This document shows, one piece after another, positions 16,753-63,563 of a DNA stretch of 64,000 nucleotides. The notes under the pieces were generated by a model. It was given only the letters and a program-made list of their open reading frames with translations. It did no database searches and was not told where the DNA came from. Origin of the DNA: Macrostomum lignano (Eukaryota); assembly GCA_002269645.1 (NCBI GenBank), contig NIVC01001192.1:62001-126000 (forward strand). Direction: 5' to 3'. The position numbers and the translations under genes were made by a program. Each line of letters starts with the position of its first letter. The first letter of the stretch is position 1.

Positions 16753-16909
16753 AGGCGGTTGTGCAGATTACCACCGGAAGAGTTTGAAATTGGTGGCTTT
16801 TTTTGAAGCCAATTCATCTAACGCTCTGGGATTTTCATTGTTTTTGTAGACTCTACAGAGCAATAACTCGCAATCAGAGTAGTAAATTCCTATCGTTAAT
16901 TAAATCCAA

Positions 16910-16915
16910 AATAAA
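16910..16915 (+). promoter_or_regulatory. candidate polyadenylation signal of the TSP1 gene
   Basis: AATAAA about 160 nt after the stop codon. Confidence 0.4.
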
Positions 16916-21300: not shown

Positions 21301-21467
21301 TGCAGGCTAAATCCTCTTGCAGGCTACATCCCCTTGCAGGCTAAATCCCCTTGCAGGCTACATCCCCTTGCAGGCCACATCCCCTTGCAGGCTACATCCC
21401 CTTGCAGGCTACATCCCCTTGCAGGCTACATCCCCTTGCAGGCTACATCCCCTTGCAGGCTACATCC
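21286..21467. repeat. 17-bp minisatellite (GCAGGCTACATCCCCTT) formed from the SINE 5' terminus
   Basis: About 10 copies; the reverse complement AAGGGGATGTAGCCTGC equals the SINE head start. Confidence 0.93.
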
Positions 21468-24829: not shown

Positions 24830-24852
24830 CCAGACATTGCATTTAATACAGT

Positions 24853-40341: not shown

Positions 40342-41084
<743 letters not shown>

Positions 41085-41098
41085 CTAAATGGCGGGCT

Positions 41099-44000
41099 AA
41101 CAACAACAACAACAAAATACGCTGTCATGATGGTAAAAGTCAGCGTCACAGGGCGCGCTTCATGGCTTGGGCGCGAACAAAGGCCGCGCCACCGGCAGTG
41201 TCCGGGGCGCCGGCGTCAGCCAGCAGACAGTCGACATAACGCCGAGTTCGCGCTTGACCTCGCCGGTAGGGTGCCTGCAGCGTGAGCAGCAGCACCTCCT
41301 GCACCGGCTGTGGGCAGTACGACTCGGCGCGGATGAGATGGCCTGCGAGCTGGAGTCGCCGACGGCGCAGTAGATCACTTGGACGTGGCAGGCCAGCGCG
41401 GCGATAGAGTGCCGCGTTGGTGACTCGCTCGACGCCGATGTTGAAGGCGGCGCGCAGCAGACCAGCGTGCGCCGCATCGACTTGCTGTTCGAGTGAGTCC
41501 GTCAGCGTCCAGGTCTCGGCGTTGTACAGCAGGACGGTCTCGATTACCGCCTGGAACAGCGCCGCCCTCTGGCGGTCCGGTAGGGCCTCGGACTGCAGGA
41601 CTGCCCTCACAGAACGAAAGGCAGCCCAGGCAAGCCCGCGGCGGCGTCGCAGGTCCTCGCGAGCGTCTGGAACCAGACCGCCGAGGTAGACGAACTGCTG
41701 ACATCGCGGGAGTTCGGTCGCCTGCCCGTCAGCGCCTCGGCAAAATATTGCAGCCTCGATGTCGTCCGGCACGCAGAGCACAACGGTCTTCTGCGTGTTG
41801 ACCACCAGGCCGACACTCGCCGCAACGGCAACCAGCCTGTCCAGCTGCCGCTGGGCGCCCTCGACGGTCGAGGACAGCAGGGCGAGGTCGTCGGCGTAGC
41901 CAAGCACGCTGAGCCGCTTCTCCGGTTGACGTCGACCCACGCGTCGCTGCAGCAGAAAACCGTCGTCGTCGGTAGGAAGAGCAGTCCGCAGCACCCAGTC
42001 AAGCACCAGGACGAACAGAAACGGCGCCAGCGTATCTCCCTGAAGCACTCCGGAGGATGTCTCAAAGGAGTCCGATAGGCCGTCCGGTGTTGTCACAGCA
42101 GCTGTCGTATCACGGTACATCGCCATGACGGCGGAGATCAGCTGCTCAGGCACGTTGTACGCGCGGAGCACCATTGGAAGCACGGCTCTGACAACCGAGT
42201 CGAATGCCTTCTTGAAATCAATAAAGATTAAAATCAGTATCGACTGACGAATCCGCGCCTCCTCGATGACTCGGCGAAGAGCCAGGATCTGCGCCACTGT
42301 GCCGCGATGGGGCCGGAACCCGTTCTGCTCTGGGCGCAGGTACGGATCCAGCACGGGCTGCAACCGCGAAAGCAGCATCCGGTTGAACAGCTTCGCTGCA
42401 CAGGACTGAAGGCAGATGCCTCGATGGTCTTCAAGCCTAGTGGTGCCCGGCTTCTTTGGAACAGCGACGATGTGCGCCGTGGTCCATTCGTTGGGCGCCG
42501 CCTCACCGAAGAGCACGCGGTTCATCACTCTGGCGACCTCAGCGGCCACACAGGGGATGCGCAGCGCCTCGATGGGCACCTCGTCCGGACCCAGCGCTTT
42601 CCCGCCCGGTGACTGCTGGGCGAGCTTGACAACGTCGGCTGCGTTGACTGGGGCTACGCTGAAACTCTCCTCTGCCGGCAGCGGCGTCTCCGGCGGCAGC
42701 GTCAGACTGTCTGGCAGCGGGGGTGGCGGCGCGTTGACGATGGCGGCGAAGAACTCGCGCAGCTCGTTCCTACGCTCGTCCGGCGTGTCACCAGCCAGGT
42801 TCAGCGGATTGCGCCGCTTTCGTCCCGTCAGAGCGTTGATGGCGGACCAGGCCACGCGCCCTCTGGCATCGGGCCCAGCGCAGAGACAGCCTGAATGGCG
42901 TCATCGACAGCCGCTTGTTGGCGCTGCAGGTAGACAGCTGCCAGAGCTGCCTCTGCCTCGCGGGTTGGTCGCCTGCTCAAGCGGAGCTTCTCCAGATCTT
43001 CCCTCGCTGCCTGAATCGCGGGGTCGTCCTGCCAGACCGGCTGCCCACGTTGAGCCGGCTGCATCATCGGGACTGCTTGCTCCGCGGCGGTTCTGACTGC
43101 AGCGCACACTTCCGCATACTCGGCACTTCCACGCTTGTCGCCCAGCGCGGTGTTAAAGGCGCTAGCAAAGCGACGCTGCGTATCGGTGGCTCTGAGCGCG
43201 CGGTAGTAGCGCCGCGGTGGCCGCTTCGGCGGACGGTAGAGCGGATCGCGAAGGTTGAGGTCGCAGATGAGGAGCCGGTGATCGGACCGCAGAGCCAGCG
43301 GCGTGATGGTGCGGCAGTTGACGGCGCGACGACGCTCACGGAAACGCACGAGCACGTGGTCGAGCTGTGCTTGTCTCCGGGTTGCGTTCCTGCCACGCGC
43401 GTTCCGTCGCCTCCGCTTGCAGCCCACGAAGGTTGCGAGACCGCTCAGTGGCTTGCGGAAGCGGGTGTTGGCCGACACCATGTCCTGCCTCTCCAGGAAG
43501 TCCTCCAGTGCCTCGGTGTTGTTGTTCCCGCGTGGCGTCACGAACAGCGACCTCTCGGACCTACGCAGGACTGCGTTCAGGTCTCCGAGGGCGACCGCTG
43601 TGTCACGCTGCGCCGTCGCCTCTACCTGCACTGAGAGCTGCTCGAAAAACTCTTGAGCCTCGTCAGGGCGTGTGGCAGGGGGCGCGTACGCGCAGAACAG
43701 GCGAGCATTCCGACCGCGTAGCCGGACGTCGATCCGAAGCAACCGGGGGGACAGGGAGACGCAGCGACAGCTCTGCTGCAGCCTCGGCCTCGGCAGCGCT
43801 CCAACTCCTCCACGGCCTCGCTGGTCCGCAGAAGTATAGTAGAGGGTCCACCCGGCGCCCAAGTCCTCACAATGAAGTCCCGGGTCGGCCTTGATAGACA
43901 CCTCCTGCAGCGAGATGATGTCGCAGCTCAGGTCGTACGCCAGCTTCGCCAGCACCCCTCTACGCCAAGCAGCCTTGAGAGTGCGGCAGTTCAGCGTCCC

Positions 44001-44270
44001 GACCCGAAGCATGCCCTGTGGTACGGCTGGGGCTCGATGCAGTTGAGCCTCACGGTCCCCGGCGCCACCCGGAGGATCCGAGTGGACCCGCGCGGCAGCT
44101 CGACGGGCGGCGCCACGCAGCCGGCCTCGTCGGTTCCGCTCACGCCGGCGCTCAACACGCCGACGGGCGCTCCGCTGCCCTCGCTTGGTCCTGCCGCATT
44201 TGGCCGCCGCAGCAGTTAAGCGCGGCTCTCCGCTCTGACCACGAGGAGGTAGCGGCATTTATCTGCACCG
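41099..44270 (-). mobile_element. RTE-type non-LTR retrotransposon (single APE-RT ORF, one frameshift, (GTT)n tail)
   Basis: LRVGTLNCRTL, ISLQEV, GDLNA, LDHVLV, SDH (APE); EQNGFRPHRGT, FIDFKKAFDSV, GVLQGDTLAPFLF, YADDLALL (RT); ORFs 42828-44258 and 41146-42855 are joined by a 1-nt deletion near 42880; (AAC)5 at 41099-41113. Confidence 0.92.
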
Positions 44271-44648: not shown

Positions 44649-44896
44649 TATTAATTTATTGAGGCTAAGCTAGGGGTAAGAGGTCTACTCATTGATTCTT
44701 GTCCTAAAATGCATTTAAATGCTTTTTGTTTAACTTTCTACTGAACTGAAAGTAGCTTACACGCAAATGTGCCGAGCCGAGTGGGCCCATCTAGCTATAT
44801 AGTAAGTGTGGCCTAGTATAGATTCACCATTAAAATTTATTATTTCAAATTATTTATTAAGAAAAATAAAAATTCCATTTCAGCGGTCCGTGTGTT

Positions 44897-47800
44897 ATGC
44901 CAATATTAGTCTTCGATTTGGTCTTAATTTACTTGTGTCTTTGTCATGGTAAGTAATAAAACGTGCTTTTGACAACTGGGATTGATTAATTAAAATAATA
45001 ACCCAATCTTTATTCCCTTATCAATAGTCGCTCAGTCAGCAAATCAGCACTGCATTGACAAAGCGATTAGAAACATCAGTGTCAACATTTACGAGTACAA
45101 TCCTTATAAGGTGAGTGTGTATGGACCTTTGACAAAATGCAATTGATTTTGCCCCAATCTAGGAATCTATAGGCAAGGTAAAGCTGATAATTAGGCTTCG
45201 AGGTATGACCTGAAGATGAGGCCGCATAACAAAAAATAAGACCACGGTATCCTCGGGATTAGGCCATGTAAATCCTCAGGATTAGGCCATTTAAATCCTC
45301 AGGATTAGGCCATTTAAATCCTCAGGATTAGGCGTGGTGAAACTGCAAAGAGATAAAAGCCGATGCTTGACTTAAGCAATCAGTCAGCTATCTAATTATC
45401 CCATCGCTCAGGTACTAACGTACATCCGCGACGCCAAAGGCTATGCGAGAAACCTTCACTGTCGATGGGTGCTGCGCGCCAGCGATTATACCAACCCGCG
45501 TCAAATGCTACTAACAGTGGCAAATGTCGACTTTGACGAAAGCTCTGGCGGCGGTAACGGCACTCTCGGCCTCTGCAACACCGCTACCGGCTCCGCCGAT
45601 GTGTTCAGCTTTGCCTTCTCTGGCCAGCTGACCAGCGGTTGGTTTTCTGCTATTTATGATTTTTAACCTTTCTAAATTACAATGTAAATGTTAGGAACCC
45701 GAAAGTTTCTATGCATGCAGTTTATTAGCTTTGTGCCGTACAAACTCGGGCCTTGCCACGCTCTAAATCTTATCTCTGCGTGTCTGCTTTTTTTGTTTCC
45801 GTTTTCACTCGAAATTTTGCTTAATTAGAAGTGCAGAAAGTTTTCTGGTTGAAAGTTTAAGTTTCTCGTTATAGCTCGTATAACCAGAGTTACCTGTGTA
45901 AGGAGTTACCTGTCTACAGAGTTACCTGTGTAAGGAGTTACCTGTCTACAGAGTTACCTGTGTAAGGAGTTACCTGTCTACATAGTTAACTGTCTACAGG
46001 GTTATCTGTCTACAGGGTTACCTGTCTACAGGGTTACCTGTCTACAGGGTTATCTGTCTACAGGGTTACCTGTCTACAGAGTTACCTGTCTACAGGGTTA
46101 CCTGTCTAAGGAGTTACCTGTCCACATAGTTACCTGTCTACAGAGTTACCTGTGTAAGGAGTTACCTGTCTACATAGTTAACTGTCTACAGGGTTATCTG
46201 TCTACAGGGTTACCTGTCTACAGGGTTACCTGTCTACAGGGTTATCTGTCTACAGGGTTACCTGTCTACAGGGTTACCTGTCTAAGGAGTTACCTGTCTA
46301 CAGGGTTACCTGTCTAAGGAGTTACCTGTCCACATAGTTACCTGTCTACAGAGTTACCTGTGTAAGAAGTTACCTGTCTACATAGTTAACTGTCTACAGG
46401 GTTATCTGTCTACAGGGTTACCTGTCTACAGGGTTATCTGTCTACAGGGTTACCTGTCTACAGAGTTACCTGTCTACAGGGTTACCTGTCTAAGGAGTTA
46501 CCTGTCCACATAGTTACCTGTCTACAGAGTTACCTGTGTAAGGAGTTACCTGTCTACATAGTTAACTGTCTACAGGGTTATCTGTCTACAGGGTTACCTG
46601 TCTACAGGGTTATCTGTCTACAGGGTTACCTGTCTACAGAGTTACCTGTCTACAGGGTTACCTGTCTAAGGAGTTACCTGTCTAAGGAGTTACCTGTCCA
46701 CATAGTTACCTGTCTACAGAGTTACCTGTGTAAGGAGTTACCTGTCTACATAGTTAACTGTCTACAGGGTTATCTGTCTACAGGGTTATCTGTCTACAGG
46801 GTTATCTGTCTACAGGGTTACCTGTCTACAGGGTTACCTGTCTACAGGGTTACCTGTCTACAGGGTTACCTGTCGACAGGGTTAACTGTCTACAGGGTTA
46901 ACTGTCTACAGGGTTAACTGTCTACAGGGTTAACTGTCTGCAGGGTTACCTGTCTACAGGGTTACCTGTCTTTATGGTTACTGTTACGCAAATATTAAAT
47001 AAAAATATTCATAATTCGTCCGGCAGGTCAAGTATCGTCTCAGCGTTGGTGCTCAAACAGTGACGCTGAACGGGCGCCAAAGCAGATGCTGGCAAATCTG
47101 TGGGACTCGTAAGCTGTGGCTTGTGTATATGTGATATAAATATTATGCGTTTATTACTGTTATATAGTGCTGCTACATATTATTAACCCACCCCCCAACA
47201 GTTCAAACAAACTATCTGTGGAATTTCAATCCGACAACAGACAGAAGCGTCACAACGCTAAAGGTGTTCAATTAAATGTGCAGATTTTGTCCAGGGACTA
47301 CTGCTACGTTGACATGCTGTACCACGAGAATTATTGCTATTTCATCACTAAAGGGTTGCTCACCTTTGACGAGGCGGCCAGAGCGGCCAGCTACATGCTG
47401 GGTAGCGTGACCGCGTTCACGGATGCTGATGCGGCTTTGCGATTTGTTGATGCCAGTGAGTCTCACAATTGGCCAATTCTCTGCTCTGCTAATCTGCTAA
47501 CATTTAGTGAGGGGCTATCAGTTCGGATGTTGGGGTTGTTAATCAGTCAGGGGAATGTCAGTAGGATATGTCAGTCAGTCAGTCAGTCAGTCAGTCAGTC
47601 AGTCAGTCAGTCAGTCAGTCAGTCAGTGAGTCAGTCAGTCAGTCAGTGAGTCAGTCAGTCAGTCAGTCAGTCAGTCAGTCAGTCAGTCAGTCAGTCAGTC
47701 AGTCAGTCAGTCAGTCAGTCAGTCAGTCAGTCAGTCAGTCAGTCAGTCAGTCAGTCAGTCAGTCAGTCAGTCAGTCAGTCAGTCAGTCAGTCAGTCAGTC

Positions 47801-50544
47801 AGTCAGTCAGTCAGTCAGTCAGTCAGTCAGTCAGTCAGTCAGTCAGTCAGTCAGTAGCATGTCTGTCAGTCAAAATTCTTATAGAATAGTTTTTAGCTAA
47901 ATATTTGAATTCAAACGCAAATACCATTATTATTTGTGTGATAAAAATATGCTTTGGTCGTATTCTTGTTTGACATCGAAAACTGTCAGAGCAATAGTTT
48001 TTTAAAACTATAATATAGCTTTGTGTATGCCTGTGTGTTAATTCCCAGCTAGCTCAATAGCGCCTTTGTAAGTTTAGGTTACTGTGCATATACAACAAAT
48101 AGTACATCCGCATTCTGGATAGATAATTGAGAGCAAATTAGGCTTGTTAACTTCACAGTGTACTTATTATAACAAATAATAATACTATGTAGAATGATAT
48201 TTTATTGACATCTAAATCGTTATCAAACTCGGCGTTGCGGAACACAAATGCTCCATTTTATATGCAACTCTTGTTTGACCGGAAATCCGTTGGTCTGTAA
48301 AAAATGATCCGCTGTATTTTGTCTAGCTGTCTACTATTAGTAACATAATAAACAGCTACTAAATATGACTGTAATATATGATGCTCAGCTGAAATTTTCC
48401 TGTTTTTTATCTCAGTTTCTACATTACCAGCACCTGTAAGTTAAGCAGAGTTGGCCGCGTTTAGTGCTTAGCTGAATAGGCCGCTTGCATCACCCATCAA
48501 GGCAACAACTTGTCTTGAGCGAGTGTTAAGTTGAGCTGGGAGTTGCGATTCCAAATCAAGCCATTTTGCATTGGGCCAAGCGTATATTCATTTTGAATCG
48601 CATTGCAGACATCAAGCGAGGCGAGCTACTGCCAATGATTGTACCGCTGGATTTGACGTCTAATAAGCTCTGGACTGGAGCTTATAAGGACGCTGGCGAT
48701 GCTGCCGGAGATAGTATTAGGTACCTGGATCCGCTCAGCGATTGCAATGAAGTGCGATTTAAACTACCACTGTGAGTTGAAATCATTTTTATTTGGAAGC
48801 CAAATTTTTTAAGTGTATTTGTGATCCGCGAGCGGTGTTTGATACTTGGTGTTGATAATCTTGTACTTTTGGATGATCTCTTATGAGCATTATTGTATCT
48901 GGTAGAATGCTGCCACCAGAGTCTGTGCGTCCATAATACAGAAATCATAAATTAATATTGCAAACTCGATATAATTTTACTTTACCTGCTCTCTGCTTAG
49001 GTAGGTTCACTTAGTACAAAGATAGCTCAGTCATTCACATAAGATCACATAAGCACATTTAAGATCTCACAGAGACAGTTTGTTGTTGAACGCGATGCCA
49101 GCTGTTGCCAGCGCGGATCAGCCCTGAGACTGAGTAGAGTGATGGATCCTCCAGGAGCATAAGCTCGGGCCACCTAAATATTGGTTTCCTATGTGGCGCC
49201 TCTCTGCTGGGCGATTGGGACCCTTGTCGGGTTTAGGTATCCTAACTGCGAACGAAGCACAATATTTTTTGCAATGTTTAGCACCGCCAACCCGCTTGTG
49301 GACCTGCGGAGAGTTGATCCATCGAGTGCAAACTACCCAATAGACAGGGTCGACCGTAGGCGGGCACAAAGAGCCCAGCGAGATCAATTAAGCCTGTCAC
49401 CAAGGCACTGAACACCCTCCAATGCCTAGGATCCTCGGTATCTGGTGGATAACATTGGTACGGTGTTACCAACTTCTGGGGCTCACGCCTTGCAGGTGGT
49501 CATTTTGCCAGCTCCCTTTGCAAGTAGGTTCAACTAGCGCAATTGTACTCTTGAAGCAGCACAGAGCGTGTTAGTCTTCCTGAAATACGCACAGCTCAAC
49601 CGGCGACGCGTAAGTTCGTCACCCAACCCGCCGCGGTCACACAAATAACCCTACGGATCGGGTGCTCTAAAATCACGTAGACCGTTTTTAAAGTTTGTGA
49701 ACACTTAATTAATTTAGACAAACCGAATACGAACCTATTCTTAACCTTCATATAACTGTTATTGCCGTCTTCAACTATTTTGCCTGCTGAAAACTACTAT
49801 TAGTAACATGACGCAGAACTTAATAATAATGGTTCCGTCGCAAAACTGCCAGCCTCTTGCTGCCTACGAGTATTCAAAATCTGTCATTACTTGTAGCACA
49901 AAAACATCTTTTACAACTAGATTAAGTGAATAACGTTCCAAAATTTTCCTCCTTTATTTATTAAATAGTTCAACTTCAACTTCACTTATAAGTAGGCAAT
50001 ATAGGAGTTGTCAATCGTGATTTATTTCAGAGTGAACGCCAGTTCCACTGAATCATCAAACTGCGGCGTAGCATTTCAGCTGGTATCCGGCAGGCCCGTG
50101 TTCACCTGCGAGCCCACTAATCAGCGCCTGCCCGCTCTGATTAAATTTGCCCAAATTCCCTTGGTGAAGAAGCCGGCAGCAGCAGCCGCTGAAAACCTGT
50201 TTGTCACGTGTTTCACCGCCTGGGTTGCCAAACACCAGCCGGCCGCGTGCTCAACCGGTTGCATAGTTGGCATCGTAGCTGGTGCACTGGCGTTAGCCGT
50301 AGCGCTTTGCTTCCTAGTGGCCTGCTGTCGCCGGAAATGCTCCTGGAAGCGGTATTCCCTGACTGCTAGGAGGAGGCAGAACGCCGCCACCTGCAGGGAG
50401 GAGTCGGTCGGGTCCGGCGTAGAAGAGAAATCGCCAGCTTTGCCTGTCGATGCCGCTGTCGAGTCCGATCTGTCAGACGCTCAAGTCCAGATGATGCCCG
50501 GCAAAAGCGAAAAACCCAGAGAAACTGAAGCTCCAAAGCTCTGA
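44897..50544 (+). CDS. paralog A: signal peptide - CUB-like - atypical CTLD - TM receptor-like protein, 7 exons, 457 aa
   Basis: join(44897-44948, 45028-45110, 45412-45637, 47027-47108, 47202-47455, 48609-48771, 50031-50544) = 1374 nt, in frame. GYARNLHCRWVL...VDFD, VEFQSDN...AKGVQL (CUB-like); DYCYVDMLYHENYCYFIT...EAA, LWTG, CGVAF..FTCE (CTLD-like); TM IVGIVAGALALAVALCFLVACC. Confidence 0.85.
45255..45332. repeat. 23-24-bp x~3.5 repeat (CCTCAGGATTAGGCCATTTAAAT) in paralog A intron 2
   Basis: Seen directly. Confidence 0.8.
45886..46970. repeat. 16-bp minisatellite (CAGGGTTACCTGTCTA) with higher-order structure, paralog A intron 3
   Basis: About 67 monomers; variant CCACATAG recurs at 46122, 46330, 46506 and 46698. 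Confidence 0.96.
47570..47855. repeat. (TCAG)n microsatellite, paralog A intron 5
   Basis: Seen directly; explains the SQSV ORFs. Confidence 0.98.
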
Positions 50545-50754
50545 ATATTGCAAGAGTACCTCTCTCTTTTTTCATTTTTACCTGCTTATCAGTATAGTTT
50601 TTAATTTTCAGAGAGACCGGACAAGCAACACGCAAGAAACTATCAAAAATTTGGCTATGTATAAAAAATTAAAAATGAACACTTTCTTGCTCTTACGCTC
50701 TGCTTCATATGAAAGAATATAGGCTGATCACTTTTTCATTTGAGCGAAGGGGCT

Positions 50755-51065
50755 CTGAACACACTGGTGCACTTTTAGTGACATTGTCACACAACCAGCG
50801 AGAGGCATTACTGTCCATTGCATCGACTCCCCTGAGCAGGCACACAAGCGCGTGGATACGTACGCAGTCATACGCACAGGCACACACAGGAGTGTACAGC
50901 GGCCCTAACTTCATTTATCTTAGGTATGTACACTTCACTGTGCCTTGGGGCTTGGCCCAAGCTGAGATTCCAATTTAGCCCCAAATGAATGTGACTGCAC
51001 TTGGAATCGAGCCTGGGCCGCTGGTACTTCAGAGCGCCGCGCCAGCCCACTGGGCTACGACCCCC
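50755..51065 (-). mobile_element. SINE family 2 copy between paralogs A and B
   Basis: Reverse complement GGGGTCGTAGCCCAGTGG...AGGCTCGATTCCAAGTGCAG; body shared with the 35095 copy. Confidence 0.85.
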
Positions 51066-52504
51066 ATAGTTTAATGAAAGGTGACTGTTTAGTTGTGGCC
51101 ACATTTCAGGTGGCAACATTAATTACTCTAATAAAGTGTATTAATTCTTTCTGAAACATGTGGCTCAATTTAATGATAGCTTATTCTGTATTAATTGTCC
51201 GATTTCGTTAAATACAAATAACATTTCAAGTTTAAATTAGATTTTTATAATCTGCTCAATATTCCAGCACAATTTAATTGGTATAGTAGTGAAGCCTTAA
51301 GCCCAATAGCTTAATTGAAATTAATTGGTGAATGAATTTCCATATTCCATATTTTCAGCTCTTTTCGGTGGTGTCTGTTTTTCAATTACTTTTTTTTAGT
51401 TAAACTTGCAGGAGCTAAATGAAACAAACTGTAAAGATTTTGTTGCGCGCTAGCTTTGCATTTTACAGTCCCTTCACGAAGCACAAAACAACTTAAAATT
51501 TTAAGCAGCTGATCGTCTATCTAATGGGTTTTATCCTTAGTTTTCCTCTTTTGAACAAAGTGTTTTTTCTTCGCTAATTTTTGGTCTTTAATCCGCGATT
51601 TTATTTCTGAACTCCGTTGGCAATGTAACTGTACTGGAAATTTATATTTCTATATGATTAATTTACGATATTGCACGTCAGAACAGAATAATCAGATGTA
51701 TTCTTTCGATTTAAAATATTTATTATAACATGCACGAGTATAGCCAATATGAATGATGATTGAAAGTGTACCCCCGATTTGCTATTGCTTGTCATATTGA
51801 AATTTCGACATATTTTTATTCTTAACTGCTTACTCATGCCTTGCTTATTTCATCGCCTTGCTATTGTTAAAGTACACATTTTTAAAAAAGCATAGCTGCT
51901 CATTTTTATTCATTTTTTGGATGAATCGGTCCTATCGCATTGTTTCATTGCCAATTGTTTTTGTTGCATGTTTCACAACGGTAAATGTACCCATCCGCCT
52001 TGTCCATCTTGGTGCTAAGTGTTCGTTTATGGTTTGTCAACTAACTTGTTCATTTTCTGTTAGGTAACATCTGGGTAGCAACTTAGGAAACAATGCAAAA
52101 AACTTATTTTGTTTTACTCACGGGTTACAGCTGTGCACCTACCTGATTATGCAATTAAGCAAACCTGTCTCGTACACAATACAAGTAGTTGAGGCCTATT
52201 TATCAATATTTTCTTCTTTGTAATTTCTGCGCTTACTTAGTCTTGTACACACCAATAAAGCGTATTATTTAGAGGCTTGTGTATTATATACACATATATG
52301 TATATAACGATTTTTCTTTATTCATTTTCTAAACATCATTTAGACTAGAGTGACCATTTAGATTGCATGCTGCTTGGAACCCTCCCGACTCACAGAAACT
52401 ATGGGCAAGTTTTTGTCGCGTATTTTATATAAGTTAGAAAACTTATATATCAAATCAATAGTAAATATTCATCCTAATTGCCTCGTTTCAGCACAAAAAA
52501 ATCA

Positions 52505-55240
52505 ATGAAGCAATCGACTTATTTTACAGTGGCTCTGCTACTACTTTTCTGTAAGCTTGTGTGGTTTTTTTCAATTAGAAAACTATAAATGGATCCTACT
52601 TACGGTAGTATATCAATGGCTACGCTTTTAAATTGCATTTACAGTTGTGTTAGTCAATGCGAAAGATCTTTATTGCATCGACAGGGCGACTTATAACCAG
52701 ACAGTTGACTTTAGTAGCGATTCGAGGGTAAGAAATGCTTATTTAATCGTACTTACTCTGCCTCTGAACAAAAACGCAAGTGATTTGTCTTTTTGTTGTT
52801 GCAAATTGTCTCACTTTAAGTAACAATTACGTAATGTTTACGCTCCCAGGTGATGACTTATGTTAAAGACGAGCCGGGCTACCAGGTGAACCTGCAGTGC
52901 AAGTGGATTCTGCAGCCTGCCAACTACGATAAGCCCAGTCAGATGTACATTCGTGTGCCCGTTATCGACTTTGACGTCAACAATGTAACAGAGGCTCAGT
53001 GCAGCCTTTCCAATCCCAATGTTGATGTGTTCAGTATGAAGCTGAAGATGAACGATAGTAAGTGGTGGCCTAGGGAGCTGAAATGCTCATTTGCACTCGT
53101 ATATCACTCATATGTCACCTCGATCCTCACTAATTTACTAGCGTTTGTGTATTTCAATTTCAGCTGCATCATCTCTGAATGAGTTCTGGTGCTCAAACAA
53201 TTCAGTGAAAGTCAAGAGCCAAATCGTGAACTTGTGGGACTCGTGAGTGTCTTGGAGAGTATGTGTCAGTCTTAGTTTTTCTTGGAAATTCATATTTTCA
53301 TGCTTGATCCACCTTTGCTCAGGTCGTACAAACTGGCTTTGGAGTTCCGCTCTGACGATAAGCAAGTCTGGTCCAACGCCAAGGGAGTGCAGGTGGATGT
53401 GCAGGTGCTGGGCAGAGATTATTGCCACAGGACCATGCTGTTCTTTGAGGGCTCCTGCTATCTGATAACACCTGAGCGCCTGACACCTGCTGAGGCGTTC
53501 AACATCGCAAAGAATTACCTTGGCAACGTCTTCACGGTTCCTAAAAACAGAAACGACTCAGACTTTTTCCGTCCGTTCATTCAGCGAAGTGAGCTGCTTT
53601 GTTCAGTGCTTTCTTTAACGTGGTGTGGCCTTTTTCTTTTACTAATTATTGTTTGCATCTCTGCAGACTCTGACAGGCTCGAGGAGTTCCCATTTGAGTC
53701 TCCGCTGTCCCTAACCGGAAGCAAGGTGTGGACCGGCTACTTTATCCGCTTTCTCGACAATCCAACCGCCTCGGACGTCGCCGATAACATCCTGTCTGCC
53801 CAGTTCTTGGATCCGTTGAACTATTGCATCGTTGGCAGCAGGAAGTTGACCGGGTTAGTTCTTTTTCTCTAACCTCTAAACCTCTAAAAAGAGATTGTAG
53901 CCTAGTGGTCAGAGCGTCGGACTCACGACTTGAAGGTCGGGGGTTCTATTCTTGACTCACTCGGAACAATTTGTGTCCTTGAGCAAGACACTTAACTCTG
54001 CATTGCTTCAGTTCACCCAGCTGTAAAATGGGTGCCATTGTAAAATTAGCTGGGATAATTGAGGGTGTGCGTGACGACCCCCCAGTCCTTGGACTGAACA
54101 GCCGTACGCAGCTTTCAGATGCGCCGCGCAATACCTGCGGATGAGCTGTCGGTTGCACATCTGCCCATTAAGGCAGGTGTAATCAATTATTATTTTTTTT
54201 GACAGTACAGATTAATCTTTCTGGCTCGTGTTGGCCTGAAACTTGGGACGATTTTCGCATAATGAGGGACAATCCTCAAGATGCAGGTTGTGTACGTGTC
54301 TGACGATGACACTGTGCCTGCGTACGTATCAGTGTGCGTGCTCTTCACGTCCTCGTTCGTCAGCGTAAATGGTCATGACTGTCTTCCTCGCTGGCGGCGG
54401 GTCGACCGTCGCTTCGATTTCTTAGAGGCGGGGGCTGTGTTCACCCTGGCGCATAGAACGCTGCGCTTTACCACTGCCCCCCCCCCCTGAGCAGCCGAGC
54501 TTTTTAGACCAATATGCCAAATCTCGTTTAAGGGCGTTTTTAGTTGCAACTGCATCGAGATATAAAGCAAAAATCCTAGTGCCGAATGAAACGTCAAGAT
54601 ACGTAACTTAGAAATAGTCAATTTAAAAATCAATATCAGTCGAAAGAATCCTCCTAGTATTGTTGAATGTTTTATATTCATTCAGTGATGCAATTTACAT
54701 TAAATTCTAGTTTCGCGTTTAGTCATTACATCAATTTTCCCGCTATTTTTGAGGCAGCTCTTGTCTTATTTTTGTGAAAATTCTAAATCATACGGTACAG
54801 AAAGTGTAACAAATGGCCCAAAACTGTCTTTTTTTAGCACCCTCGGAGCCGGATTGAATGTCCAGAATAAACAGAGTCAGTGCGCCGTAGCCCTAGAATT
54901 TACCAACAATGGTGACGTGAAATTCACCTGCGAACCAACTGACCTGCGACTGCCAGCCCTGATCGAATTCAAGCAGATTCCAGCCGCGAATAATGCCAGC
55001 CTGCACTTGCAACTGTTTAGAACTTGCAACTATCTTTCAGGAGACGGCCCGTCAGCTGATGTCGGTGGATTTTCATGCAAAATTGGCTGCGTAATCAGCC
55101 TGTCAGGGGCCGGCTTGGCCATTCTGTTTGTAGTTCTACTGTGCGCCTGCTGCGTCTATTGCGCCTGCTGTCGGAAGCGCGACTCGCCCTGGGAAGAATT
55201 TGTTATTCCGCAACACGAAGTGGAGCCTTTTACAGCTTGA
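52505..55240 (+). CDS. paralog B: signal peptide - CUB-like - atypical CTLD - TM protein, 7 exons, 423 aa
   Basis: join(52505-52550, 52646-52728, 52850-53057, 53164-53242, 53323-53588, 53667-53853, 54838-55240) = 1272 nt, in frame; same intron phases as paralog A (1,0,1,2,1,2); TM VISLSGAGLAILFVVLLCACCVYCACC; AATAAA at 55258. Confidence 0.87.
53892..54170 (+). mobile_element. SINE family 1 copy in paralog B intron 6
   Basis: TGTAGCCTAGTGG A-box; GTGTCCTTGAGCAAGACACTTAAC...CAGCTGTAAAATGGG central domain. Confidence 0.87.
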
Positions 55241-56427
55241 TAGTCGATGGTGTAATTAATAAAGTTTGAAGTGCTGAGCTGTCTTAATCCTGCTTGTTAC
55301 ATGCTTCTATCCATGCTTATACATTTGTACACTTATTATGCTTAAAATATTCGCTTAAGGTACACGTTACCTCATCACACTACCGAGCCTGTACGTACAA
55401 TCTATAAATTGTAAATAAACTTTTGGGGTGGGTGGCTCCCGCCACAGTTATAAGATCTGATCCATCGATTATTTGATTTGAGTCGTTCCACCACGTGAGT
55501 TGCTTCAAGGTTTGGCGTTACAGAACACGTCATATTCGTCGAAACGTCTGTCAAATCGTAGCAAGAGTTTTTTAAACAAAAGAAAATTATTTTTGGCTGG
55601 TTGGCTGTGTTAGTTTTAAATGATAATACTATTACGAATAAAATAGATTTTCAATAGATCGATCATTACTCTGCTTATGCTTAGTTTGAGACATTATCTA
55701 TAGAATATTCATTTGTAAATAATGAGCATACTGTTTTTACAGTTCAAGATACAGTATTTAGCTTATTTTTGCCCTGTGCAATATATTTTTCATATTGTGC
55801 AGATGTTTAGGATAGGTTTTTTTCTGTAAATATGATTTACCTGCACTGCAGCTACTGAGCTTACCAGCTGACCAGAATCTAGTCGAGTTTTCAATCACTG
55901 TTTTTAAGACCATTTTTTGTCTGTAAATCAATCATCCACTGTGCATGTAGACTGTTTTACATTTTCTCTCAACCATAGATGCACAGTGCAATTGATTTTT
56001 TGTTGTTTTTCTCATTAGTCCTCTTTTACCATCTTTTACCATGCATATTTACTATTTGACCTTGTCCTTTTAATTGTAATTAAATTCTTGAATTGCACTT
56101 GTTCATCATCTATAAAGCAATTTTTGCACCTGTCTCGCGCAGCTCTTCTTCGAAGCTGTTTTACACCTGTAATTAATTAATAAACTTGATAAACAAAATG
56201 CGTTGATTGCCCGCAGATGGTTGACTTCGATGGCTTTATATTTTGTCAATTATGGCGTTGTTATAAAAAGAGCATATACCAGTACAGTTGAATATTTTTA
56301 AGCTTACTATAAACTAATAATTTATAGGGCTATAGCTAACAAGCATAACCTTAGTTTCATTTTAGTTTTTAATAAACAATATGCTTTAGCATCCTTTGTA
56401 AAATTGTGTATTTCAGCCGTGAGAACA

Positions 56428-59400
56428 ATGCTTTTTCGATCTGTCAGCCTTACAATTTTTATTCTGATGTCCGGTAAGTTATTAAATCAATCAAATCTTA
56501 GTTTTTTTATATTTTTCATTCGTTATTTTTATAAATTGAAAATCAAAAAGGGCTTGTCAACTTGAGCTCATAAAGTGAAGCCCGAGTAACCTACGTACAC
56601 AAATGACACTAGGAAGACTGGTTTGGAAAACATAGGAAGACTTAAGCTCATAAAGTAGAGTCCCTATTATCCCTTTGCTTGTTTTCCCCTATCCCAATCC
56701 AATTTTCGTCACTTTTTTGCCAAACCCAACTTCCTATTGTCATTGTGAGCAGAATGACGTATCGTTTATGTACATAGGCTATACGGGCTCCACTTTATGA
56801 GCTCAAGTTGACAGGCACTTTGTAAACAACTTCATAACGTGATCTTCGAGTATGAGCGGTTTTCTAACACCATGAATAACTGGTTCGGGAAGTTTCTGGG
56901 TTAGAAGCATCCCGAAAATGTTAATAAAGCTAATAATTTGACCATCCGTTCTAATAAAAAATATGAGTATATTCCCTAACGCCTAACTTCAGTAGCGACT
57001 GTCGGAGCTGAGGATCAGCACTGTATGGACAAGGCCGTTAAGGATATCAACGTTGAAATCGGTGGCGACAACCCACAGCGGGTAAATATAAAAAGTGTCG
57101 GTTTTTCTTTTTCCATTATGCCAGCAGCAGGTTTGAGCAGTGAACCAAGTCAGGTAACACTAACGCGTCTGAATCTCGCGCACAGTGGTTCCGACAATAC
57201 AATTATTGTACAATACGCCAACGTGCCTTTGCTTCGGCTTTTCGTGGGACTCACGCTTCTGAGCGCCTAATACTGAGGCATAGATGCGTACATGTATGTA
57301 CTGTATGCTGATAATGATATTGCCAGAGCAGCTGTACATGCTGTCTGCTTGTGTACGTATCCGTGTGCTTACGCGCTTTTGGGGTTAAATGGGTTACTTC
57401 ATACTTCTTAATTATCCGTTGATGTACAGCTTTTGTTAATTAATTTTTTCACTTCAGGTGATGACCTACATTCGAGACGAGCCAGGCTACCAGGTGAACC
57501 TGCAGTGCAAGTGGACTCTGCAGCCTCCCAACTACGATAAACCGAGGCAGATGTACATTCGGGTGCCCGTTATCGACTTTGACACCAACGATGTGTCTGA
57601 GGCTCAGTGCAATATCTCCAATCCAAATATCGATATTCTCACATTTTCACTGAAGCAAAGTTTGAGTACGTGACTTTTAATATCAATGATCTTTCGCGTT
57701 ATAAAAATAAATTCAAGCAGAACTCGGCTGTTTTTCAGGGGAAGAGGAGATTAATCCCTGTAATGGAGGCCAGAGTACGTACATGTCGATGCAGACTTCA
57801 GGTGAGTAATCTGTGTGATTCTTTGTTTCATTTTCATTTATTTGAATTCAACTGCTTATTCTAAGCAGCAACATTGGGTCCTGTGTAATTTGCAGCCGAA
57901 GAGAAGCCACAATACATGTGCTCAAGCAAGTCATTCAAAATCAAGGAGCAAATCGTGAACTTGTGGGACCCGTGAGTGTCTTGAAACATCTGTGATTTTT
58001 CGTGCATCATGTGGAAATGGATTTTAGTATTTGCTCTCTTACCTTTGCTCAGGTCGTACAAGCTGGCTTTGGAGTTCCGCTCTGATGATAAGCAAGTCCG
58101 GTCCAACGCCAAGGGAGTGCAGGTGGATGTGCAGGTGCTGGGCAGAGACTATTGCCACAGGACCATGCTGTTCTTTGAGGGCTCCTGCTATCTGATAACA
58201 CCTGAGCGCCTGACACCTGCTGAGGCGTTCAACATCTCGAAGAATTACCTTGGCAACCTCTTCACTGTTCCTAAAAACAGAAACGACTCAGACTTTTTCC
58301 GTCCGTTCGTTCAGCGAAGTGAGTTTCAGGTTTCTAATTCTGTGAAATGTACAGTACAGTCTGCATTGTTGTGTATTGTACCTAATGTAATCTTGTATAT
58401 ATGGGGATTCCTTCAAGAGGACATTGCGATTTCATTGCGAAATTCGAAACAGCGAACCAGATTACTAAATTTATTCGTTTTGTGAAGCTATAGAAAAAAC
58501 TGGAAAGACAGCACACCCTGTCATTTCTGTCGCGTCGCCCAGTGTAACTTCAGCCTGGTTTACCGATATAGAGGCGGATACATAAGAGGTGGATACATAA
58601 GAGGTGGATACATAAGAAGTGGATGCATAAAAGGTGGATACATAACATTGCTTTGTTATAGCTTTTGCTTTTGCTTTGTTTTGTTTGCTTTACTCGGTAC
58701 CAAGGGGGCTGTAGCCCAGTGGTTAGAGCATCGGACTCACGACTTGAAGGTCAGGGGTTCGATTTCCGATCCCTGTGGAACAATTTGCGTCTTGAGCAAA
58801 GCACTTAACTCTGCATTGCTTCGGTTCACCCATCTGTAAAATGGGTGCCAGCATTAGCTGGGGTAATTGAGGGTGTGTCGCGACCCCCCCCCCCCCCCCC
58901 CAGTACTTGGGCTGAACAGCCGTATGCAGCTTTCAGATGCGCCGCGCAATAGCTGCGTCTGAGCTGTCGGTTGCATATCTGCCCATTAGGTATAAAGAGG
59001 AGATGGTTAGCGCTCAATTCTCTTGTCCAAGCCAGCCGCAAAAAACCGGCATCAAGCTGATGCAGCGATCTGTTGGTCGCTTCGAAGACTCCCTCTTGCT
59101 TCTAAAAGATCGTGAACGTCAACGTCAGGTGTGTAAGTAGGATTGTTGAGAAGACAACGCAGCACACATTCGACAGAACCTTGTGCGTGGAAGGCTAGAT
59201 TATTAAGATGCATCAGTTGATGTGTTCCTTATTACCAAGACCTTTCTTAGTAATCAAGAAACAATCACTTCTAGCTACTGCTAGGCAACCCAGTAATCAA
59301 ACGAAGGTATTTATTACCTTGAGTCCTGTTTTTTAGAGCTCTTCCTTGCGTAGATCTCGGTCTTCTTGACTTGTTAGACGTCTATGGTTTGTAGACCAGG

Positions 59401-61328
59401 TCCGAATTCTTCTTACTTCCACTGATGTCGTTTCCGGCCGGTATCTGTCGTTCGGACCAATCAGAAGCTTCGTATGAACAATAGGGATCCCTGCGCCGTA
59501 ATGCGGGTTTCAGTTAAGCCTTCTCATTCTAGCAGTGCCTTAATGCACTCTAGGTATAGCTCCGGTAATCACTGATAGTCCTCTAAGATCTATCTGGAGT
59601 AAGGCTCCTTCTGGAGACTACAACCAATGGAGTCTCAAATAGACTCTAGAGTCTCAACAGACTCAAACACAACAAAAGTAATAAGTCGAATCAAACACCT
59701 GGCGCAAATGAGTAAGGCTTACCGCAAGAACTCGACCGAGTCTCGATTGACTTAGTCTTCAGGAAGTCCCCTAAGGCTTCCTCTTCGGAGCGTCTCCTTC
59801 TGGAGGTTCGGTTGTTGGCTCCTGGTCCGCTTCGGACCACTTGTATTTATAGGCAAACGGACCCCTTTCGAGGTCGTCCATCATATTTTCGTAAATGTCA
59901 AAGGGTCACGCTTTGGTTGCTGTCAAGCATGACAGGGTAGAAAGTTAAGCCATTAGTCTAGTGTAAGCGCGCGTGATTAGTTACCGTAGCAGGGTTATTT
60001 TTAGTTACCTTTGATTGGTTCATCCGGGTGCAAGCCGAATGATGAATCGCAGGTGGGGTTTACACTTGACAGTTGTAGGTCACACGTGATTGGTCGGTTG
60101 CAAGTAGTGTTGTAAGTAGTACTTACTATACTACTGAGTAAAACTTAAGAGTAATATGTTAAAAGTTTTTATGACTTTGCGGGAGGTAAAGCACTCTACA
60201 CAGTAACTGACACCGTCAGCAAATCGGTGGTGCTCAAAAACTACGTTGACCCAGAACACCAGACGAACCTATTCAAAGATCACTGCGAAATGGAGCTGGC
60301 TCTCCTTGGATAAAAACTCGGCGATATTTTTGTCGACTCCCTCTTGACTTATTAAAACTGTAAAGCGTATTTTAACTTTTACGGAGTTTCAGCCACAAAG
60401 AAAGTATGAAGAGGGAGGGCATGCGCAGTGTGTTTTACTCAGTTTGATTACGCACCTGAACTGACCGCTACTAGTCGTCTCAAAATTTTATTTAAAATAA
60501 TTTATGAAATTCCCACATTTTCACAAGCATTAGTCCAAAAACTCTTGAAGCGCTTGTAGTAGCTTTAATTTTTAATTTTTTAGACATTGACAGAAGCCGT
60601 GAGTTCCCATTTGAGTCTCCGCTGTCCCTGGTCGGCAGAAAGATGTGGACCGGCTACTTTGTGGATCTGCCAGCCCAGAGCCCCGTCAATGGCGCCCTGT
60701 TTATGAACCCGGCTAAGAAATGCTGTCAGGAGAGGCGAAATATGACTGTGTGAGTTACCTTATAAAATATTTATCTCAGTTTTGTTAGAGCCTTGCCTTG
60801 AATTTTGCTAAGGTCATCAGTTATTGTCCTATTTATACGTATTTTAGCTACATCAGTAGCACTATTAAACAGGCTGTGGAGCCAGTTTGTGCCGTTGCCA
60901 TGGTGATTACTAGTGGTTCCCGTGTGAATTTCACCTGCGAATCGTTGAGCTTAAAGCTACCAGCTCTGATCGAGTTCAAGCAGATTCCCACCATCAAAGG
61001 CGACACGCATCCGCAACTGTTCACCACTTGCGACACGATGCCTGAGAAGCAGCTCGACACGAGTTCCGCACCGACAACAACTGTTACTACAGCCGAGCCT
61101 CAGTCTACAAAGACTGTCATTATTATCGTGGTAGTTGTCTTGTTGGTCGCTATTTTAATCGCCGTAATTGTCGTTGCCATTGTAATATTCTTCAAAAGAA
61201 GAGCCAACCCGCAAAGCGGTGGCCAAACTGAAGCTGAGACTCCTGCTGGACCGGAGAAAGTGCCTCTGAATGCACGCGGAGAGGATGGGGAGGCTTCTCA
61301 GCCGAGCAAGATCGACCCGACAGTCTGA
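56428..61328 (+). CDS. paralog C: signal peptide - CUB-like - atypical CTLD - Thr-rich stalk - TM protein, 7 exons, 443 aa
   Basis: join(56428-56473, 56993-57081, 57458-57665, 57896-57971, 58053-58318, 60584-60749, 60848-61328) = 1332 nt, in frame; same phases; TM VIIIVVVVLLVAILIAVIVVAIVIFF followed by KRR; AATAAA at 61438. Confidence 0.87.
56547..56821. mobile_element. MITE in paralog C intron 1
   Basis: Perfect 23-bp inverted repeat TGTCAACTTGAGCTCATAAAGTG (56555-56577) / CACTTTATGAGCTCAAGTTGACA (56791-56813), extending imperfectly to about 60 bp. Confidence 0.8.
58571..58646. repeat. 15-bp x~5 repeat (GGATACATAAGAGGT)
   Basis: Seen directly. Confidence 0.85.
58704..58988 (+). mobile_element. 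SINE family 1 copy in paralog C intron 5
   Basis: GGGGCTGTAGCCCAGTGGTTAGAGC...GGTTCGATTTCC tRNA-like head (A and B boxes) followed by the shared body. Confidence 0.88.
59132..60200 (-). mobile_element. possible solo-LTR-like insertion in paralog C intron 5
   Basis: On the minus strand it begins TGTA and ends TACA, with CTATAAATA (~59850) upstream of AATAAA (~59310); no TSD found. Confidence 0.3.
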
Positions 61329-63563
61329 AAGTCATATTGACGCGAAAGAAGTTGAAAACGAATCGTTTGAATTAGTTTGTTAATTTTAGCTTAACAGTTT
61401 ATTGCTGTGTTGTATGCTTATACATAAAAATTAAGAAAATAAAACCCCGTGGAGTGTTGCTGATTTTTCTGATTATTATAGTTTACCGTTGTATTAGCAT
61501 CATGACGCACCGGTTTTCAAGCTTAGACCTTCGATTGTAATATTAACATTGACTATATTTTATTCATATTAGTTTATTCTATATTTACGTTAAGCGTTTT
61601 CTCTGGTCCTCACGCAAAACAACTGAGGCCCCAAAACGCAAAAGCAATCAAACATTTGATTCCTTGATTTCAACTTTTGGTCGCAGTGTTTTTGCGTTTG
61701 GGGACGAAGGCACGAGTTTGTCTGAATTTAGGCCACTAGTTAGATGCTTTTTCGGCCAGTTGTCCAAACGCGTCTACTAATGACCGAAATTCGGACACTC
61801 GTGCCCTCGGCCTCACCGTCAACCTGCAACCGGCCACTTTTTGTTGACTTGGACAAGTGGCCGAAGAAGCGTCTACACTTTATTAGTTGCCGAAATTGGG
61901 ATATTTTCGGCCTCTTTCCGTACACTTACAACTAGCCATTTATTTCGGCACATGGTCGCCACGGATCACGGCTTGGAATCTAAACAAAACTTTGAGTGAA
62001 GTTCGTGTAATTTATATATTCATTTTCTGTATAATGCCTACTATATTTTACCATTTTACATTTTATCTTACTTTTTACCCCTTTTTATTGTAACTTGGGA
62101 TTTTCTATAGCACTATAGAGTGTTATTTTATAACTTTTGCTAACCTGACCATTTTTAAAACACACTTTATGGGCTCTTACATGCCTTATCTATCTTTATG
62201 AATGTAGATATTGAAGATAATTTAGCCTGATAAATCGCTTGCGCAATTTAGCGTCTGACACCTCGTATCCAAAATTATCTTATTTATGTGTCTTGATGTA
62301 ACCGCCCTTGTCGCCTGTCCGCTCCGTAGAGAGACGAACGCATGACTAGAGGGGGCAATGACCGTAGGCTGCCTATTACCGGGCAATGACCTGACGGACC
62401 TCCAGCACCAGACTGTCCCGCCCACATGATTGATAGCTTTGGTAGCGCTTTGTGACCAGAGGGCCAAGGACCCACATGGACCCCACCTGTAGCCAAGGTG
62501 CAATAGTTGGTCACTCGGTCATGGTATGACCGAGTGGCTGCCACCACTCTATGTGACCTGGCGCACCTGGATCTTACTACCAGACCTCTCGAGGCTAGAG
62601 CCCCGCCTGGGATGGTTACCAGGAGATTTAGGCTAACAGGGGAGACACATGCAGCCGAGTACAGGGACTCTTCTTGGGGCATGATCGGGAACTCTGGGCT
62701 CAATCTGGAGGATTTCTCAGCAGGGGATTCTTTGTGGCTGTGAGCGAGGCTGACTTGCGACTTTGATTACTAAGAGTAGTATGAGGCGAACATGTACTGT
62801 CTACAGTTTAGATTGCTCAGGGCGAAGGGACGCGTCAGCATGGGGTTGCAAACCTTCCTACTGCCATTCTGTGCCAAGACTCGCTAATCCCTCTACTGCA
62901 CGCACACACGGCCCCGCAGCACGCACTCACAGGCGGGCTTTGCACGGGGAGAGGCCATTAGCTTACCCAACTTCCTTATACTTTGCCACCCCGGGAGAAA
63001 GGCTTAGCAAGCCATGAGTGAAATGATGGTGAGGTTAGTTAATAGTTAATAATTTGGCCCTTAGGCAAATAATCAGGCAATTAGGCGGCTTCACTATTGA
63101 GTAAAAGTACAGCAAAAGATACGGTACCACGATTGGCTCAGCTCTCTAATCAAGTAATGGCAAAATAGGCAAACCCCGGATAAGCAGAGGCAATTAGAGC
63201 ACAAATTAGTAATAGGAACTTACCGGCAGCTGCACAGAGAGAGAGAGAGAGCGGCGGAGTGACCGAGGGCGGCTGTAGGCTGCAGTCAGGCAGACAGTGA
63301 AGCGACGAGGCGCTGATGTAGATCAGGCGATGCTGATGATGCTGGGCGGTATCAGACCGCTGGCCGATAGGCGAGCTCACTTGGGAGCTAAGGATAACTG
63401 GGCAGTATCAGACCGCGGGCCGGCAGAGGTTCGTCCTACAGACGAATAGGTCAGAGCTACGTCTGGCAGCGAGTCCACAGTAGGACGAGAAGGAACGCCC
63501 AAGCAAGAAAAGGAAAGGCCAGGACCGAGACCGAGTGAGGATTCACATGCCGAAAACCGCCTC

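Follow-up and report, generated by a model that had tools for sequence, protein, structure and literature searches.

Proteins that combine a domain of C-type-lectin-like kind (CTLD) with a CUB domain are known from Caenorhabditis elegans, where they belong to the expanded CLEC family (e.g. CLEC-4, CLEC-41, CLEC-42), and some of the secreted CTLD+CUB members bind bacteria and are antimicrobial in vitro (PMC8051790). This family is the closest known kind to the three genes described here, g1, g2 and g3, which lie on the plus strand of a 64,000-nucleotide stretch of DNA of the flatworm Macrostomum lignano (contig NIVC01001192.1:62001-126000, assembly GCA_002269645.1). This stretch is called the window, and positions refer to its first letter unless stated otherwise. 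Window 42496-64000 agrees letter for letter with contig positions 104496-126000. We assign a probability of about 60% to the reading that g1-g3 are expressed members of a Macrostomum-restricted tandem array of type I CUB-like/CTLD membrane glycoproteins, which likely form a cell-surface recognition repertoire. Like the CLECs, the proteins are invertebrate, lineage-expanded and genomically clustered, they carry a CTLD and a CUB-like domain behind a signal peptide and they have a presumed role in recognition. The CLECs, in contrast, are secreted without a transmembrane (TM) segment, often contain two of each domain with the CTLD N-terminal to CUB, and are found by standard domain models, whereas the flatworm proteins are membrane-anchored, present the CUB-like domain before the CTLD and have diverged beyond what Pfam recognises. 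No sequence homology between the two groups was detected.

Among vertebrate receptors, NKG2D, LOX-1 and NKR-P1 likewise have a CTLD without the EPN/QPD and WND site and were among the Foldseek and hhalign matches of the flatworm proteins. They contact their ligands via the long-loop face of the domain. However, these receptors are type II, usually dimeric, and possess all canonical disulfides, whereas the flatworm proteins are type I, lack the C1-C4 bridge and have an additional CUB-like domain. Layilin, CD302 and chondrolectin are type I single-CTLD membrane proteins with a short tail and in this respect resemble the flatworm topology. Attractin combines CUB and CTLD in one type I protein of ~1400 amino acids (aa), which also contains kelch, PSI and EGF modules. 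To our knowledge, none of these four proteins has the simple CUB-CTLD-TM layout, and no sequence relation to any of them was detected in the profile search of representative proteins. Proteins of the CUZD1 type resemble the family in that an N-terminal CUB domain precedes another extracellular module and a TM segment at the C-terminus, but the second module of the flatworm proteins matches CTLDs and not the zona pellucida (ZP) domain.

Gene models and transcript support

The exons of all three genes were read from the sequence, and splice sites were picked with the paralogues as guide. This independent rebuild resulted in proteins of 457, 423 and 443 aa for g1, g2 and g3, with seven exons each, GT-AG borders throughout and intron phases 1,0,1,2,1,2. 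Together the genes extend from the first ATG at 44897 to the last stop codon at 61328. Gene g1 (BOX15_Mlig016362g1, PAA70983.1; 44897..50544, plus strand) consists of exons 44897-44948, 45028-45110, 45412-45637, 47027-47108, 47202-47455, 48609-48771 and 50031-50544. Gene g2 (BOX15_Mlig016362g2, PAA70984.1; 52505..55240, plus strand) consists of exons 52505-52550, 52645-52727, 52850-53057, 53164-53242, 53323-53588, 53667-53853 and 54838-55240. For g3 (BOX15_Mlig016362g3, PAA70985.1; 56428..61328, plus strand) the exons are 56428-56473, 56993-57081, 57458-57665, 57896-57971, 58053-58318, 60584-60749 and 60848-61328, and the deposited protein contains a further exon at 57739-57801.

An exact-sequence look-up showed that PAA70983.1 and PAA70984.1, both 5'-partial records, match our g1 and g2 models except for 3-4 additional in-frame codons ahead of the ATG. 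All three genes are already deposited, as hypothetical proteins, and some paralogues carry the UniProt name 'CUB domain-containing protein'. For this assembly, the GenBank genes were annotated from transcripts assembled with the genome as guide, and trans-splicing and poly(A) reads defined the gene ends (PMC5730564). Consequently, the junctions of g1-g3 have transcript support by way of this annotation. A preliminary description of this DNA had proposed three genes of identical seven-exon structure. Its protein lengths and intron phases were reproduced exactly and the structure holds for g1 and g2, but not for g3, since PAA70985.1 includes an eighth exon.

This extra g3 exon (57739..57801, plus strand) has a length of 63 nucleotides (nt), is in phase 1 at both ends and is flanked by ttttcag and gtgagt. 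It inserts the 21 residues REEEINPCNGGQSTYMSMQTSA, including one more cysteine, into the CUB-like domain. Counted from the ATG, g3 has 443 aa without and 464 aa with this exon; its addition to our model exactly reproduces the deposited 5'-partial protein of 467 aa. Neither g1 nor g2 nor any other deposited protein of the family contains a counterpart. The exon, its splice sites and the open frame are, however, kept in three more array copies on a downstream record of the same contig (NIVC01001192.1:144209-193840, designated L002; L002:637-866, 11012-11241 and 21143-21371). As the host intron is itself ~90% identical across those copies, this conservation is no proof of selection or coding. The extra exon sets apart a g3-type subfamily, in which the CUB-like domain is longer by 21 aa that include one cysteine.

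The CTLD-like domain

The second extracellular domain is very probably a non-canonical CTLD, as judged from profile matches in the PDB, AlphaFold2 and Foldseek, hhalign and motifs in register. For hhalign, six CTLDs whose sequences were checked against the PDB served as references (DC-SIGN, LOX-1, NKG2D, tetranectin, E-selectin and lithostathine). The family alignment reached a score of 33.4 (P 7.7e-5), compared with 12.0+/-2.1 for a column-shuffled null, in which none of 120 shuffles attained this score; a cross-control of the CTLD half against CUB gave P of about 0.45. In a search of the PDB sequences with the family profile four weak matches were obtained (E 0.2-0.6). All of them are CTLDs (convulxin, agglucetin, NKG2A) and align on the C-x10-CY...EA...L region. 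The AlphaFold2 model of the ectodomain has the order b-b-a-a-b-b-b-b-b-b in this half, and despite its low confidence the top 50 Foldseek matches in the PDB are all CTLDs. At the level of remote homology, the CTLD-like domain of the preliminary description therefore stands.

The cysteine framework and the WIGL motif of the fold are only partly present. The hairpin cysteines C0-C0' (C-x10-C-Y) are spaced as in DC-SIGN, WTGY or WTGA takes the place of WIGL, and both C2 (in CAVA) and C3 (in FTCE) are found. The positions of C1 and C4, in contrast, are both substituted and hence the C1-C4 disulfide is lost. According to the alignments, no member has an EPN/QPD or a WND motif, the WND position being occupied by K/N-F-T. 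Consequently, there is no calcium-dependent sugar-binding site, and the domain should be called a CTLD rather than a lectin.

The CUB-like domain

The first domain is probably, but not provenly, a CUB domain. Six CUB domains with sequences checked against the PDB were used as references (TSG-6, NRP1 CUB1 and CUB2, C1s CUB1 and CUB2, and aSFP). The family aligned to them over 88 columns with a score of 23.8 (P 0.0028), which was reached by one of 120 shuffles. In the same register and over 79-88 columns, g1 alone gave P 9.8e-4, and a P of 2.5e-3 was obtained for the g2/g3 type when g1 was left out; the HH probability for CUB was only 11-22%. Controls of this half yielded P values of 0.55-0.89 against CTLDs and 0.33 against F-type lectin. 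The shared register includes the motifs C-x-W, DFD, the third cysteine, xCS/xCG and the KLxxEFxSD...G ending. Four cysteines (g1 numbering: C26, C62 in C-R/K-W, C100 and C129 in W-C-S) are invariant in all members and align to CUB cysteines. This 2+2 pattern fits a CUB domain. Moreover, seven paralogue entries in UniProt are automatically named 'CUB domain-containing protein'. The CUB-like domain that had been proposed at the outset is thus probable by hhalign (P ~1e-3), the cysteine pattern and these names; the negative results that oppose it are weighed below.

Membrane topology

In g1 a putative signal peptide (aa 1-~22) is followed by the CUB-like domain (26-177), the CTLD-like domain (178-326), a TM segment (364-386) and a tail of 71 aa. 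The corresponding parts of g2 are aa 26-168, 169-334 and a Cys-rich TM segment at 372-401 with a tail of 22 aa, and g3 has its TM segment at aa 373-399 (seven-exon numbering) and a tail of 44 aa. In all three proteins only two regions exceed 1.6 in Kyte-Doolittle windows, namely aa 1-~22 and one C-terminal segment. Directly behind the latter a basic stretch is located (RRK, RKR or KRR), and the ectodomains of g1, g2 and g3 contain N-glycosylation sequons. By hydropathy, g1-g3 are predicted to be type I single-pass membrane proteins with a putative signal peptide, which agrees with the signal peptide, single TM helix and short tail of the preliminary description.

Between the CTLD-like domain and the membrane, a short conserved segment (LPALIEFKQIP...LFxTC) precedes a variable stalk, which is Thr/Pro-rich in some members. 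The membrane-proximal segment is Cys-rich in g1 and g2. The tails are entirely different between paralogues, and inspection of the g1-g3 tails by eye revealed no immunoreceptor tyrosine-based activation or inhibition motif (ITAM/ITIM), YxxPhi, NPxY or class I PDZ motif. Accordingly, with tails that lack signalling motifs the proteins would be adhesion or capture receptors or co-receptors.

Size and taxonomic range of the family

With tblastn, about six further full copies and two fragments were found on L002, 18-68 kb downstream on the same contig; both fragments carry an internal deletion in exon 5. The tandem triplet of the preliminary description is therefore part of a larger array and appeared as a triplet because the window ends there. 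Members lying downstream on NIVC01001192.1 include g5 (PAA70986.1), a fourth annotated one, and one of 438 aa. Upstream of g1, tblastn detected no family member within the window. A location of g5 inside the window was rejected, as there is no near-identical tblastn match. Parallel arrays exist on three other contigs (Mlig011208g1/g2 with Mlig028750g1 and Mlig026576g3; Mlig004633g2/g3; Mlig029759g1 with Mlig016910g3), which fits the high redundancy that is known for the M. lignano assembly (PMC5730564). One unit of the array, L002:144-8194, comprising one full and one fragment copy, recurs at 10519-18693, ~10.4-10.6 kb downstream, with identical tblastn scores. Either the array contains a higher-order duplication here, or the assembly holds a duplicate.

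Word-indexed and exhaustive HMMER profile searches of 1.84 billion representative proteins found no homologue outside M. lignano. By 'Macrostomum-restricted' we mean that the family is without detectable relatives among other flatworms and animals represented in the searched collections. One F-type-lectin repeat protein of 1037 aa (P0024; E 3e-7 as the sum of seven repeats) was judged to match the CAVA...FTCE stretch locally by chance. As only M. lignano proteins were matched, the view that no named orthologue exists is supported; so is that of a strongly diverged, tandemly expanded and lineage-restricted family, given the array and an identity of merely 33-37% between g1 and the other members. 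A literature search gave no full-text match for Mlig016362, nor did it reveal a publication that deals with a CUB/CTLD family of Macrostomum, and the locus prefixes of the family were not found in the searched supplements of M. lignano papers. The accessible part of the reproduction-related gene tables of Brand et al. 2020, which use the same style of identifiers, does not list g1-g3 family genes; this is weak evidence against a reproductive role.

Variable and constant parts

Despite this low identity of g1 to the rest and saturated synonymous divergence (dS), the cysteines and motifs are invariant in an alignment of six sequences. Divergence is distributed very unevenly along the genes. Exon 5, which codes for the last part of the CUB-like domain and for the CTLD-like domain's first half (g2: 53323..53588, plus strand; g3: 58053-58318; g1: 47202-47455), is 97% identical at the nucleotide level between g2 and g3 with a dS of 0.09, compared with 0.43-2.7 in the other estimable exons. 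In exons 2 and 7 dS exceeds 2, and exon 1 is saturated. The adjacent intron 4 (81 nt) is 73% identical between both genes. All eight intact copies of the g2/g3 type share 94-97% nucleotide identity in exon 5 over more than 130 kb (on L002 at 1023, 11398, 21528, 28825, 38499 and 44000), while exon 3 reaches ~86% and the other exons 56-86%. The uniformity of exon 5 presumably results from short-tract gene conversion or from recombination limited to one exon.

The opposite is found for the coding region of the CTLD long loop, from WTGY to CAVA (g2: aa 253-304, 53741..54880, plus strand, interrupted by intron 6; g3: 60658-60887; g1: 48683-50061). Here the mean pairwise identity is 0.38, in contrast to 0.69-0.93 in scaffold segments. 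The ratio of nonsynonymous to synonymous differences (pN/pS) is ~0.98 in the loop vs 0.2-0.45 in the scaffold, but at near-saturated divergence a ratio of about 1 does not separate diversifying selection from relaxed constraint. Other variable parts are the first CUB exon (exon 2), with an identity of 0.45, and the signal peptide and the stalk/TM/tail region with ~0.18. In the CTLD fold, ligands are usually bound at the long-loop face. Thus, the combination of a constant scaffold and a variable loop fits a repertoire with a variable binding surface.

Transcription and splicing signals

A TTTCAG acceptor is located shortly before the ATG of each gene, at 44878..44883 (plus strand) 13 nt ahead of g1, at 52486-52491 (plus strand) 13 nt ahead of g2 and at 56411-56416 (plus strand) 11 nt ahead of g3. 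The deposited partial coding sequence begins at the first in-frame codon past TTTCAG in g1 and g3, and one codon later in g2. From their sequence these sites are probably spliced-leader trans-splice sites. In the annotation of the assembly, the prefix Mlig016362 denotes a transcriptional unit or cluster of units, whose division into genes followed the trans-splice and poly(A) sites (PMC5730564). Together, the acceptors and the common prefix suggest spliced-leader trans-splicing of a polycistronic precursor. Consensus matches for poly(A) signals were found by a pattern scan; candidates are AATAAA at 55258..55263 (plus strand), 18 nt past the g2 stop codon, ATTAAA at 50668-50673 (plus strand) after g1 and AATAAA at 61438-61443 (plus strand) after g3.

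Two deposited models join different paralogues. In the g5 model, exons 1-2 come from one copy and exons 3-7 from another located 28 kb downstream (L002:10001-39632, corresponding to NIVC01001192.1:154209-183840), and in PAA69040.1 (L003:10001-16970, contig NIVC01001355.1) the 5' part is g2-like and the 3' part g3-like. At the latter locus, exons 4-5 of the g2-like copy had no tblastn match at 75% identity or above. Such models may reflect co-transcription with inter-paralogue splicing, or else mis-assembly of multi-mapping reads.

Weighing of alternative explanations

Several observations weigh against our reading of g1-g3 as a surface repertoire of CUB-like/CTLD proteins. In the three full proteins and six ectodomains, neither Lectin_C (PF00059) nor CUB (PF00431) was matched at E<=10, and the Pfam scans overall returned TM-type noise only. 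The AlphaFold2 ectodomain model was calculated from alignments of 6-7 paralogues only and has a low overall confidence, with a predicted local distance difference test score (pLDDT) of 41 and values of 50-67 in the CTLD half. The Foldseek matches to this model have E values of only 1e-3 to 2.5e-2 and template-modelling scores of about 0.3. The CTLD half also aligned to the F-type lectin repeat protein in hhalign (P 8e-4), values near 1e-3 not being decisive; this protein was the preselected best chance match among 1.8 billion. For the first domain the CUB-only profile produced chance matches only among the PDB sequences, and AlphaFold2 on this part alone gave an unreliable model of mostly strands (pLDDT 33), for which Foldseek returned noise. 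The literature and supplements provided no expression, localisation, binding or functional data. Furthermore, g5 (also P0018) has a Q/L-rich end without a TM segment, and the pN/pS of the long loop is ambiguous, as stated above.

The negative Pfam, PDB and AlphaFold2 results for the first domain, a length of ~143-152 aa as opposed to ~110 aa for typical CUB domains and the small HH probability leave some room for another or novel Cys-stabilised, beta-rich fold at the N-terminus, with motifs that would resemble those of CUB by chance. We consider this unlikely, although still worth keeping in mind, because two lineages with 37% identity align to CUB in one register along nearly the whole domain, the controls are far weaker, the 2+2 cysteine pattern fits and the automatic UniProt names independently say CUB. 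A ZP-type second module, as in a CUZD1-like CUB+ZP+TM protein, would agree with the UniProt name 'ZP domain-containing protein' of a truncated paralogue from another assembly (A0A1I8GUA1, P0002). It is nevertheless very improbable, since Pfam Zona_pellucida (PF00100) had no match in the three proteins and six ectodomains, and all sequence and fold matches of this region are CTLDs. The region following the CUB-like domain spans ~180-205 aa with six cysteines, which is short for a ZP module with its 8-10 cysteines, and the low-confidence model predicts two long helices in the positions of CTLD α1 and α2, while ZP-N and ZP-C are all-beta.

The proteins could also function chiefly as lectin-like effectors that are soluble or shed, e.g. 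in gut, mucus or secretions, like the secreted CTLD+CUB CLECs of C. elegans, with a transient or dispensable anchor. The TM-less annotated paralogue g5 and the variable stalk, which could be cleaved where it is Thr/Pro-rich, speak for this explanation. But g1, g2 and g3 all possess a strong TM helix with a basic stop-transfer stretch, no furin-type site was noticed (no search was aimed at one), and the C-terminus of g5 may be an artefact because its model splices across several copies. Hence, a soluble role appears improbable for g1-g3. Finally, the array might be largely a product of neutral churn in a genome of recent polyploidy, driven by tandem duplication and unequal crossing-over, with many redundant or decaying copies and no diversified recognition. 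The two fragments with exon 5 deletions, the 10.4-kb higher-order duplicate (copies A and C, with identical scores), pN/pS ratios of ~1 in several segments and the highly redundant assembly (PMC5730564) are consistent with such a process. Opposed to it are the intact frames, conserved splice sites and transcript-derived models of g1-g3, the low pN/pS of the scaffold, and cysteines and core motifs that are all invariant between g1 and the other members in spite of saturated dS. Neutral churn as the full explanation is therefore quite improbable in our opinion.

Proposed function

In the preferred reading, that of a membrane-bound recognition repertoire, a signal peptide would be followed by a divergent four-Cys CUB-like domain, the CTLD, the LPALIEFKQIP...LFxTC segment, the variable stalk, the TM helix and a short tail. 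The CTLD is predicted to keep the N-terminal hairpin and C2-C3 disulfides and to have lost both the C1-C4 disulfide and the calcium/sugar site formed by EPN/QPD and WND. The proteins would act as a binding or recognition repertoire at the cell surface, in which the hypervariable long loop of the CTLD and the CUB-like domain's variable N-terminal portion may give each paralogue its own ligand. A calcium-dependent sugar would be less likely here than a protein or a non-canonical ligand. The constant scaffold, above all exon 5, may be held uniform by gene conversion or by recombination among the copies. Candidate ligands would be of microbial, self/partner or gamete origin, and the immune, allorecognition, gamete or chemosensory roles suggested in the preliminary description are conjectural.

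A more far-reaching interpretation, which we regard as rather doubtful, is a Macrostomum-specific repertoire of at least 11 copies per array plus the parallel arrays, with a concerted scaffold exon, hypervariable loops, N-termini and tails, and possibly co-transcription and spliced-leader trans-splicing with occasional splicing between paralogues. Such a repertoire would serve recognition of microbes, or of self, partner or gamete in this outcrossing hermaphrodite.

If the proposed role is correct, the family is a tractable candidate for recognition receptors, and its clearly separate variable and constant parts are well suited for binding and RNA interference tests. M. lignano is described as the one flatworm with stable transgenesis at present (PMC8717057). 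Since the CTLD and the probable CUB domain have drifted below the reach of standard domain models, families of this kind are presumably under-counted in flatworm genomes. The pattern itself is familiar, as lineage-specific tandem expansions of lectin-like or CUB surface proteins are common in invertebrates.

Neighbouring genes and repeats

The content of the window is eukaryotic, with spliced genes, non-long-terminal-repeat (non-LTR) retrotransposons, short interspersed elements (SINEs) and microsatellites. Three unrelated neighbours are located upstream of the array: a gene at ~2700-12100 (plus strand) with thrombospondin type 1 repeats that are broken by long coding-like minisatellites, a Na+/H+ exchanger exon at 18821-20029 (minus strand) and a single-exon open reading frame (ORF) for an M24 peptidase of the methionine-aminopeptidase type at 37342-38346 (plus strand). 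A GC-rich non-LTR retrotransposon with endonuclease and reverse-transcriptase ORFs (40428-44258, minus strand) adjoins g1, and a second one at 23249-28414 (plus strand) additionally encodes RNase H.

Within g1, a 16-nt minisatellite with 68 copies and 86% matches (45885-46971) occupies most of intron 3, and a (GTCA)76 microsatellite (47570-47872) lies in intron 5; both yield long spurious ORFs. Rfam and tRNA (ARAGORN) scans of the region called nothing, including the tRNA-like head of a SINE-like interspersed repeat of ~275 bp. Copies of this repeat are present at 53896-54170 and 58710-58988 (both plus strand), at 21028-21294 (minus strand) and on L002 at 8267-8537 and 18869-19138, so that intron 6 of g2 and intron 6 of g3 each hold one copy.

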